A program made the translations under genes and the position numbers. A stretch of 63,053 nt of DNA, the filler included, from Olpidium bornovanus S191 (Eukaryota > Fungi > Olpidiomycota), in the NCBI GenBank assembly GCA_017911155.1. It is 30 parts of 30 records of this genome, joined end to end, with 100 filler letters (N's around TTAATTAATTAA, not from the genome) between each part and the next. Parts side by side here need not be neighbours in the genome. Positions count along the whole stretch, not along the records: positions 57,867 to 59,556 come from JAEFCI010006988.1; 29 more parts are not named here. One strand, 5' to 3'. The notes under the pieces are model-generated. The model had not been told where the DNA came from. It saw nothing but the letters and a program-made list of their open reading frames with translations, and searched no databases. This document shows positions 56,759-59,665 of this stretch, in pieces. Within the stretch, counting starts at the first letter, position 1; each line of letters opens with the position of its first letter.

Positions 56759-57868
56759 TCAGGTCAAGAACGCGTTCGTTGTATTTTACCCGCGGGGGTG
56801 AGGGCTACGGGAAAAGAGGGAGGGAGGGGTACAGATGCCTGAAAAATTGCAAATACTAGTAACTGGTGCTAATAACCACCACATTTCCTTCTTTAACAAT
56901 GCGTTCAACAGAATTGCCAACCAGCTGTTTGAGACACTGCGCAGCATGGTTATTTGACGTAAACCTTCAGAACCTCACCTTTTGCAACAGTGCGCACAAA
57001 CAACAAATCACAAATCTCCTCTCCGCTCATCCTGCTCACAGGACTCCTTGGCCATCGCGCAAGAGGTTGTCCTTGACAAGGACCTCAAGCCAAAAGAAAA
57101 GAAAGATCCCGCGTCATTCGTGGCAACGCCAGCCGCTGTCGGCGACGAAGCTGACGCCACAAGCAGATCGAGTCCGAGCGGCAGAGAAGGCAGTGTCGGT
57201 TTCGGGCACGCAGGGGGCTCTGGGGGATCCGGTTGGTAAGCGGGCTTGCGTGTCGCACTCAGACCAACGTCGATAGCGCTACGACGCAGCCTCGAACTCC
57301 TCTGCAGCCGGCGCTGCGTGCGAAAGGACGAGGAAAGGAGGAAAACAGAGATCAGCCGACGCTGCTCGACCCGTAGCGGTGGCCGACCCCTCCGCTTGAA
57401 CGGGACCGAAGGTGATCACGACGCTCGAACAAGCCCGACGGCTTTGTTTATTTCAAACAAGCGGATCGGCTATGGTAGGGTTTTGGGTGTTTTGCGTTGC
57501 GTTCGACGTCGAGGTAATTTCGTTGGGAAGAAACTGTGAGAGTTATGTGTTTTTGCCGAGCGGTGCGGCCCCTTTTATTCAAAGAGGAAGTTTACGCGTT
57601 ATAGTACAGTACAAACATTGTGGGGTTCTGACCAAGAACACACGTAGGAGAAAAGAGAATAAAGAAGAAAGAAATAAACTCACCACTCCTCCTTGTTACG
57701 AATGGGAGGGGAGTTTACGAGCCCAAGTGAAGTAACACAATCAGTAAATCGCGGTCTTGCCAGTCCNNNNNNNNNNNNNNNNNNNNNNNNNNNNNNNNNN
57801 NNNNNNNNNNTTAATTAATTAANNNNNNNNNNNNNNNNNNNNNNNNNNNNNNNNNNNNNNNNNNNNCC

Positions 57869-58849
57869 CTCCGAAGCTTCTTCCGCTGCCCTTACTGCTA
57901 TTATCGCCTCGATGCCTCGTCACTCGCAGTACTCCGTTGCGGCTGCGGGATCCACGAGGAATGCTTTAAGCAGCGGCTTGGAGAACTGAGAACGGTTTGC
58001 CCAAAGTGCGGGGCGTTCGGCCCGCACACGCGGCGCAGCCGGCACACCTTGCTCCGCTCGGTCCTGGAGCTTTTCGAGTTCAAGCTGTGGGCCCTGCCAC
58101 TGGATCCGGCGCCGAATGTTCTTTTTCCGGGCAGCCTGGTCGCTGTCAATTATAATGATCCGATTCTGCTCTCTTTCGTCAGTACTCATCTGCCTCTCGG
58201 CTTGGAAGCCGTTCTCGCCGCGCAAGAAGGCAACACCGCCGCGCTCGCCGGTGCCCTGGAATGCTCCGTGTGCTACCGACAATTGGTTCCCGACAATTTC
58301 GACTTGCTCGGTTGCGGCCACATCGTCCACAAGACGTGCGTCCGCCAAGACTCCAAGTGCCCTTACTGCCTGGTGACAAATGATCTCACGGACCCGTCGG
58401 CGACGCACGCCCTCGGAGAGCTCCTGGATTTGTTCTGCGACAGAGGGTGGATGCCGAAGACGCCCGTTACCAACAGAAAAACGTCGCAGCAGCTCCACCT
58501 GGCGCCGCTGGTCCACATCCTGGAGCTTTTCCGCCGGAGAGACTGGCTGACGCGCTCGGCCCAGCAGCCGCAGTTCCCGAATGAACCACCCGTGGAGGTG
58601 TTTCTGGACGTTTTCGAGAATCGGGGGTGGGTTCCGGTCTTTTCCGGCCTCTCGCTCCGCGAAACTCCGATCTGCGGGGTGTGCGGATGGGTTGTGTCCG
58701 ACGAAAATCATGCGAGATTCCCCTGCGGTCACCGCCTCCACCAGCTGTGCGTCTCCTGCGTTTTTGCGGGGATGCAATGCTGCCCTATGTGCACGGGGCA
58801 CGAAACGCCAGACGACACTGACCGATCTAGATCCGCACTCGGAGAGTAA
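57869..58849 (+). CDS. Intronless triple-RING finger protein (putative E3 ubiquitin ligase); 5' truncated
   Basis: The frame is open from the contig edge. RING1 CPYC-x13-CGCGIHEEC-x11-CPKC (57887-58009); RING2 CSVC-x13-CGHIVHKTC-x6-CPYC (58262-58369); RING3 CGVC-x13-CGHRLHQLC-x10-CPMC (58673-58792). Confidence 0.88.
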   Translation, partial: LRSFFRCPYCYYRLDASSLAVLRCGCGIHEECFKQRLGELRTVCPKCGAFGPHTRRSRHTLLRSVLELFEFKLWALPLDPAPNVLFPGSLVAVNYNDPILLSFVSTHLPLGLEAVLAAQEGNTAALAGALECSVCYRQLVPDNFDLLGCGHIVHKTCVRQDSKCPYCLVTNDLTDPSATHALGELLDLFCDRGWMPKTPVTNRKTSQQLHLAPLVHILELFRRRDWLTRSAQQPQFPNEPPVEVFLDVFENRGWVPVFSGLSLRETPICGVCGWVVSDENHARFPCGHRLHQLCVSCVFAGMQCCPMCTGHETPDDTDRSRSALGE

Positions 58850-59665
58850 AGAACGTTTGTCTCCGTAAAATCAACTCCCCCACTTCCCCCACCACCTCCC
58901 CCCTTCTTGTCAAACCGGGGATCCATAGAGCACGTGACCTTCCCCGTATCTTCTTCGCAGCCTTTCTCCCTTCCTCACCGCCTTTTCTTTTACAATACAA
59001 AGGAAGAATTCAACCATAGGAGGCGCCGGTGCAGCGGACTCTTCATCGTTGTAGCATTTCTTCTCCCAAATTCCCGCCCGCCCTCCCGCCCTGCATCCTT
59101 TTTCCCCACAATGCCCCGGCTTTGGTGATTTTGAGGAAAAGAAAAGGCCAGATGCCGATTTAGGTTGGAGTATGAGCTCACTTTTAAGAGCTATCATTCC
59201 GCCTGGGCGCTCGCTCCATCCCTGACCCCCCGCCCCCCCCGTCCCCACCGCGGCACCCTAATGAGCTCGTCATTCCCCGTTTTTGCTCGGGAACCCTGAG
59301 GAGTCCGCAATAAGATTCGGAAACGTCGCCCTGCTTTGAATTAAACACATCGAGGAATTCCTTCCCCGGTCAAAACTGACGAACGTGGGGGAGGCGCGCG
59401 CGCGGTCCCTGCTGTATGTATGCGGATTTTTTTCTCTTTTTTTTTGGTCCGTTTTTGCTCCGCTTGCTGGGCGGGTTCACTCTCTCTCTGTCGCTTGCTC
59501 TATCCGTTGTCATAGGAAAACGTCGGTGAACGTGTGACGTTCTTTCCGGCCTCCTCNNNNNNNNNNNNNNNNNNNNNNNNNNNNNNNNNNNNNNNNNNNN
59601 TTAATTAATTAANNNNNNNNNNNNNNNNNNNNNNNNNNNNNNNNNNNNNNNNNNNNCCTCTCCCT

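Follow-up and report, generated by a model that had tools for sequence, protein, structure and literature searches.

A chain of three RING fingers and four copies of a recurring helix in an Olpidium bornovanus assembly: a candidate lineage-restricted ubiquitin ligase

Introduction

Successive canonical RING fingers within one polypeptide are found in Mind bomb (MIB1/MIB2) and in other multi-RING E3 ligases that are not of the RBR type. MIB also carries MZM/REP, ankyrin and coiled-coil regions, from which the fragment described here is free. RBR ligases likewise place several zinc fingers in a row. In TRIM proteins, the segments flanking the RING fold as a four-helix bundle and dimerise it, and the proximity of RINGs controls activity (PMC9675739). 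Secreted RING ligases acting as effectors have precedents in PbE3-2 of Plasmodiophora brassicae (bioRxiv 10.1101/2022.10.26.513834) and in the SPRINGs of phylloxera (PMC6892190), and both PbE3-2/PbRING1 and the SPRINGs are rapidly evolving, lineage-specific families.

Here, we describe an open reading frame in a stretch of 63,053 nucleotides (the window), which consists of 30 parts of 30 records of the Olpidium bornovanus S191 assembly GCA_017911155.1 joined end to end with filler. The frame lies in the part at positions 57867-59556 (JAEFCI010006988.1; hereafter, the piece), which has a G+C content of about 60%. A first-pass annotation, made from the sequence alone, had read it as a triple-RING protein with a novel repeated helix and had proposed a lineage-specific, module-duplicated ubiquitin ligase.

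Results and Discussion

The frame encodes the C-terminal 326 residues of a multi-RING eukaryotic protein (the window protein), the N-terminus of which is missing, with the cut falling six residues before the first RING (Table 1). Its G+C content at the three codon positions (0.63/0.47/0.73) fits a coding sequence, and it runs uninterrupted across 981 nt, in agreement with the intronless stretch of at least 980 bp noted earlier. A minus-strand ORF of 293 aa at 57920-58801 was rejected as a gene, having no Pfam match and being rich in Arg, Ala and Gly; we take it to be the usual antisense shadow of a GC-rich gene. Rfam gave no match to the piece, and exact look-ups of the 326-aa and 266-aa products found neither on record.

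Pfam model zf-RING_2 matched three stretches of the window protein (E 7.3e-12, 45.8 bits against a cutoff of 27.3), and the RING pattern C-x2-C-x9-39-C-x1-3-H-x2-3-[CH]-x2-C-x4-48-C-x2-C likewise occurs three times. As had been reported, each finger has 13 residues in its first loop, between C2 and C3, and RING1 carries a Cys at ligand 4 (C-x-C-x2-H) while RING2 and RING3 are of the RING-H2 type (C-x-H-x2-H). All 24 zinc ligands are intact, with their spacing kept exactly. The second loop of RING2 is short, at six residues. The RING-v (RING-CH, C4HC3) class, after Stone et al. in 2005, is said to have the spacing C-x-C-x7-H across ligands 3, 4 and 5; RING1 has the C4HC3 ligand identities, but its C-x-C-x2-H spacing is that of a RING-H2 frame with His replaced by Cys at ligand 4, and the assignment to RING-v was rejected. 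Pfam, which detects no IBR and assigns canonical RING models to each of the fingers, also bears out that the protein is not an RBR ligase. No B-box or other non-RING domain was detected in the window protein with Pfam.

Table 1. Positions, in window coordinates, of the features of the piece that carries the window protein
Feature	Position	Strand	Description
ORF	57869..58849	+	326 codons and TAA (58847-58849); open from the left edge of the piece, 5' end cut
RING1	57887..58009	+	residues 7-47; C-x2-C-x13-C-x-C-x2-H-x2-C-x11-C-x2-C; Gly after last Cys; Pfam, pattern
Segment of 105 nt skipped in one X2 unitig	57943..58047	-	depth 66 skipped, 33 unskipped
Variant G>T	57995	+	V43F; runs X1 and X2
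Helix copy 1	58043..58099	+	residues 59-77; preceded by GPH linker; 11 aa past RING1; pattern, HMM
Pre-RING2 region	58130..58261	+	residues 88-131; by eye like the ~45-aa pre-RING region of the homologues; hhalign E 0.1
Variant T>C	58164	+	I99T; run X2
RING2	58262..58369	+	residues 132-167; C-x2-C-x13-C-x-H-x2-H-x2-C-x6-C-x2-C; Leu after last Cys; Pfam, pattern, AF2
Helix copy 2	58406..58459	+	residues 180-197; 12 aa past RING2; pattern, module alignment, HMM
Helix copy 3	58493..58552	+	residues 209-228; no RING beside it; weakest copy, 0.1-2.4 bits, about the 99th percentile of shuffles
Helix copy 4	58583..58639	+	residues 239-257; 11 aa before RING3; 6.5-9.9 bits, above all shuffles
RING3	58673..58792	+	residues 269-308; C-x2-C-x13-C-x-H-x2-H-x2-C-x10-C-x2-C; Thr after last Cys; Pfam, pattern
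C-terminal tail and stop	58793..58849	+	TGHETPDDTDRSRSALGE; aligns with the RING-to-helix linker of module 1
Variant C>T	58801	+	H311, synonymous; run X2
3' flank, ~700 nt	58850..59556	.	non-coding, C/T-rich; no Pfam-bearing ORF

The second element of the chain is a helix motif, h-L-[ED]-[LV]-F-x3-[RK]-x-W, whose four copies lie at residues 65, 185, 217 and 245 (nt 58061, 58421, 58517 and 58601), giving the order RING1-helix, RING2-helix, helix, helix-RING3. The distance of about 12 aa between a RING and its helix, proposed for the first two modules, was measured as 11 aa (C47 to H59) and 12 aa (C167 to H180), and the two further copies placed ahead of RING3 were also recovered as copies 3 and 4, neither of which has a RING of its own. 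Of 20000 shuffles, a fraction of 5e-5 contained the strict pattern L[ED][LV]F-x3-[RK]-x-W one or more times and none contained it twice, against the four occurrences observed. Training an HMM exclusively on the helices of the three foreign homologues described below gave scores of 9.1, 6.0, 0.1 and 6.5 bits for copies 1 to 4, while 2000 shuffled controls reached a maximum of 4.1 bits with a 99th percentile of 0.3. This gives independent support to copies 1, 2 and 4, with copy 3 at the margin. All four copies are found by this foreign-trained model, three of them above every shuffle, and the helix can be taken as real. The first-pass description thus proved accurate in each detail that the piece allows to be checked.

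Duplication of the whole module was borne out by BLASTP, which aligned module 1 with module 2 at E 4e-7 across both the RING and the helix; RING1 and RING3 align at E 0.012. A Leu-containing stretch is also conserved just before each first Cys. At the nucleotide level, the only word held in common is one of 14 nt, TCCTGGAGCTTTTC, between helix copies 1 and 3, which indicates that the duplications are old. The tail that follows RING3, ending RSRSALGE-stop, aligns with the linker and first helix residues of modules 1 and 2. Judged from this alignment, it appears to stop where a fifth helix would start, as though the stop codon had truncated that helix; no helix-like remnant was found after the stop in any frame. 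A kinship between the region preceding RING2 and the pre-RING stretch of the homologues can be seen in alignment A3, but with an hhalign E of 0.1 it was not counted.

Relatives of the window protein are very few. An exhaustive HMMER scan of 1.84 billion representatives, standing for a collection of about 15 billion predicted proteins, returned six weak matches below E 1e-3 and none below 1e-10, so the window protein and any close relatives are absent from that collection, and the proposed lineage restriction was upheld. Three of the six (P0001, P0004 and P0006) match query residues 2-82, that is, RING1 and helix 1 together, with E values from 3e-9 to 5e-4. What they have in common is a RING, a GPH linker and the helix L-x-L-F-E-x-K-G-W-I-P-P, and the similarity among them also takes in about 45 aa on the N-terminal side of the RING. 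Each carries a single RING-plus-helix unit in a protein of 379-614 aa. In alignment A1, which comprises five sequences, the 13-residue first loop is present in all members; L66, L68 and P77 are invariant, as are those zinc ligands which align across the five. After the last Cys pair come x3-G-P-H, 7-9 further residues and h-L-x-L-F-E-x-K-G-W-I-P-P.

These homologues come only from environmental transcript assemblies (ENA and Logan), on contigs of 1.3-2.1 kb with Illumina adapters at their ends, and the contigs, being bounded by adapters, represent transcripts. Judged by eye, P0001 and P0004 begin with hydrophobic, signal-peptide-like segments; the gene call of P0006 starts at an internal ATG, and an in-frame upstream start (L001 116-193) adds the signal-peptide-like MMMTRTTMSVAFGFWLFAAAAIAGSS. 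No membrane span before the RING was seen by eye in any of the three. Word-index protein searches with the fragment, P0006 and profile A5 gave no further relatives, searches of JGI metagenome contigs, IMG/VR and GTDB genomes found none, and a literature search for the helix peptides returned nothing.

How, then, does this architecture compare with the described families? Pfam, the PDB sequences and Foldseek all match the RING cores and none covers the helix, in line with the first-pass annotation, which did not recognise the architecture. In the window protein and its homologues alike, the Pfam models reach no further than the last Cys, and ESM Atlas features returned generic RING clusters only (scores of at most 0.92, and of at most 0.80 for the helix region). 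Against PDB sequences, the A1 module profile matched RNF4, TRIM32, EL5, Pirh2, gp78 and others. Only the alignments to TRIM32 (5fey, profile positions 2-64 of 80) and TRIM25 (5eya/5fer, positions 2-68) pass the RING, and they reach the first 8-12 positions of the helix region, short of the conserved L-x-L-F-E..G-W core. TRIM32 and TRIM25 resemble the window module in having a pre-RING L-x-x-x-L-E-C-P-I-C, a RING core and a C-terminal flanking helix. The differences are nevertheless substantial: the TRIM RINGs (TRIM32 5fey, TRIM25 5eya/5fer, TRIM5alpha 4tkp) are of the HC type whereas those of the window protein are H2-type, the window protein has no B-box, coiled coil or PRY/SPRY domain, its helix signature L-x-L-F-E-x-K-G-W-I-P-P is not matched by TRIM sequences, and its module is repeated within one chain and accompanied by two stand-alone helices.

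The other comparisons concern the RING itself. By sequence, the nearest solved RINGs are those of RNF165/Arkadia for RING3 (E 3e-4) and of gp78/AMFR for RING2, but compared with Arkadia/RNF165, RING3 has Val for the E2-binding Trp and Thr for the linchpin Arg, and lacks the SIM and NRG-TIER context. RBR ligases share the succession of zinc fingers with the window protein, which differs in having no IBR and no RING2/Rcat pattern and in the helices that separate its fingers. PbE3-2/PbRING1 and the SPRINGs are similar to P0001, P0004 and P0006 in combining a signal peptide, or a start resembling one, with a soluble RING-H2 finger; in comparison with the window protein, they have a single RING, the helix is not reported for them, and the sequence likeness seen is limited to the RING. 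The arrangement described here is a RING with a conserved and as yet undescribed helix extension, multiplied in one chain.

Structure prediction was informative for part of the chain. With the whole fragment as a single sequence, AF2 gave a mean pLDDT of 32, and in this low-confidence model residues 55-68 are helical. With a 15-row alignment, RING2 was modelled at pLDDT above 90 and helix 2 as helical at about 66-75, while helices 3 and 4, also helical, reached 40-50 and RING3 about 55-60. In these models, a predicted RING fold is obtained for RING2 only, those of RING1 and RING3 being of low confidence, and no packing of helices against RINGs is visible, pLDDT being low everywhere except in RING2. 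Foldseek against the PDB returned RING domains exclusively, none at an E of 0.1 or lower; for the RING2 model the top matches were RNF165, gp78 and RNF12, with an rmsd of 2.0-2.6 A over 43-48 columns. An ESMFold2 homodimer of two copies of residues 116-205 with Zn gave an ipSAE of 0.09, a value that carries no weight either way.

We somewhat favour the reading that the window protein is a duplicated-module, lineage-restricted candidate ubiquitin ligase whose helix serves, in a TRIM-like manner, to bring RINGs together in pairs. It is probably an E3 ligase, with an activity that is predicted from the sequence, and analogy with the TRIM flanking helices suggests that pairing is probably the role of the helix. 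The chain was built up by successive duplications of a single module comprising a RING-H2-type finger with a fixed 13-residue first loop, a short linker, G-P-H in its ancestral form, and an amphipathic helix ending in G-W-[IVM]-P. Each helix, together with the Leu-containing stretch that precedes the first Cys, would act like the flanking helices of a TRIM RING, and the pairing could take place within a single chain. From the starts of the homologues, the RING-plus-helix family as a whole may consist of ligases that a parasitic or host-associated eukaryote exports in the manner of effectors, and those starts lend indirect support to the first-pass idea of a parasite effector.

Part of the piece is present in 13 public runs from five studies, filed under two organism labels and as one soil metagenome. 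In run X1, a contig of 2245 nt covers 57867-59017 from its own position 1095, and about 1.1 kb more sequence therefore lies upstream of 57867. Two further X1 contigs (431 nt and 2427 nt) have exact matches of 30-46 nt to 58954-59059 and, as read from their loose ends, continue at about 80% likeness; these diverged copies point to a locus with paralogues or with a repeated flank. In run X2, depth is about 48 across 57915-58883 and 0-4 beyond, a profile that looks like a transcript. A 58-nt unitig of the same run joins 57942 to 58048, an in-frame skip of a segment whose ends read CT..AC on the plus strand; it is only on the minus strand that they read GT..AG (AAG/GTGTGC … CCCGCAG/C), and there the donor and acceptor look plausible. 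The skip may reflect splicing of an antisense transcript, with the segment as its intron, or else an in-frame deletion allele in which ligands 4-8 of RING1 are lost. As this sole splice-like junction lies on the opposite strand, expression of the sense strand is only putative. Two of the three coding differences from the public runs are non-synonymous (Table 1). Separately, a 321-nt contig of X2 (window 59431-59500) matches the piece up to 59500 and continues with 251 nt unlike it, with no canonical splice site at the break, which could reflect a structural difference, a chimera or a junction to another locus.

Such a distribution raises the possibility that the contig is foreign to the organism whose label it bears, deriving instead from a parasite, symbiont or contaminant of some samples, with the gene encoding an exported RING effector of that organism. 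The mixture of two organism labels and a soil metagenome speaks for this, and the homologues, confined to environmental transcript assemblies and secreted in appearance, together with the absence of the protein and its close relatives from the 15-billion-protein collection, are in keeping with it. No read of the piece was found in two large organism-B RNA runs of about 10 million reads each, but this zero covers just 6 in 100 of each run, and the stretch is present in at least four organism-B studies dated 2022-2025. We regard a foreign contig as possible, though less likely than not.

The residues that contact E2 are the point at which the favoured reading, a ligase with TRIM-like pairing of its RINGs, meets a second alternative. 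Immediately after their last Cys, RING1, RING2 and RING3 have G, L and T, respectively, where the three homologues have R, K and R; a linchpin Arg or Lys is therefore absent from all three fingers of the window protein and kept in its single-RING relatives. The other E2-contact positions show a Val at C1+2 of both RING2 and RING3, a Pro at C7+1 of every finger and no Trp; at the place of the Trp with which Arkadia-type RINGs contact E2, RING3 has a Val. Given the missing linchpin, the six-residue loop of RING2 and the Val for Trp in RING3, catalysis may be weak or absent. It could go further than that, and the protein might be a non-catalytic RING scaffold, or pseudo-ligase, whose RINGs fold and bind zinc without activating E2~Ub and which would act as an adaptor or decoy through its helices; the end of the third module at a stop codon, where its helix should begin, would suit such a loss. 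The intact set of ligands in exact spacing argues against it, as do the C-x-V-C and C-P-x-C positions for E2 contact retained by RING2 and RING3, and many active RINGs are without a basic linchpin. We consider a pseudo-ligase unlikely.

Returning to the favoured reading of a duplicated-module ligase, a stronger version can be formulated in which the family is a new and very rare one of ligases exported by a parasite or host-associated eukaryote and the window protein a self-contained 'trivalent RING', with two RINGs paired in the chain by their flanking helices as a catalytic dimer and the third engaging the substrate or acting as a recruiter. TRIM5alpha attains a trivalent-like arrangement of RINGs only by assembling on capsid, whereas here it would be built into one chain. 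This version is speculative, and we think it quite improbable as a whole. Acquisition of the gene from a giant DNA virus, which the first-pass annotation had named among several possibilities, or its carriage by a mobile element is extremely improbable: the frame is intronless over its 981 nt, the 3' flank has its roughly 80% alike copies elsewhere in X1 and the ESM Atlas features include Nucleocytoviricota RING clusters (scores of at most 0.90), but these scores fall within the range reached by shuffled proteins and reflect generic RING content only, no viral, prokaryotic or metagenomic relative of the window protein was found in IMG/VR, GTDB genomes or JGI metagenome contigs, and within the piece there are no inverted or long direct repeats, integrase or transposase.

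Although few protein families are as well catalogued as the RING ligases, this extension of the RING has neither a Pfam model nor a solved relative, and the combination of RING and helix was encountered in just four of about 15 billion predicted proteins. Were RINGs paired in the chain by the helix, the window protein would be a natural single-chain multimeric RING and informative on RING proximity and the activation of E2~Ub. Export of the family, to which the N-termini of the homologues point, would enlarge by a new class the few cases of eukaryotic pathogens or symbionts injecting ubiquitin ligases of their own into a host. Should neither hold, it would be one more lineage-specific RING protein.

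The remaining three HMMER matches, P0002, P0003 and P0005, are other multi-RING proteins, matched through their RINGs alone. P0002 (325 aa) and P0003 (524 aa), both from Logan contigs, have four RING-H2 fingers each without the helix motif; they are like the window protein in their serial RINGs, and the likeness is one of generic RING similarity. These two proteins show that multi-RING chains have arisen repeatedly in unsampled eukaryotes. P0012 (393 aa) and P0006 are distinguished by an internal tandem duplication of nine residues (LTSRMQELD) close to the C-terminus.
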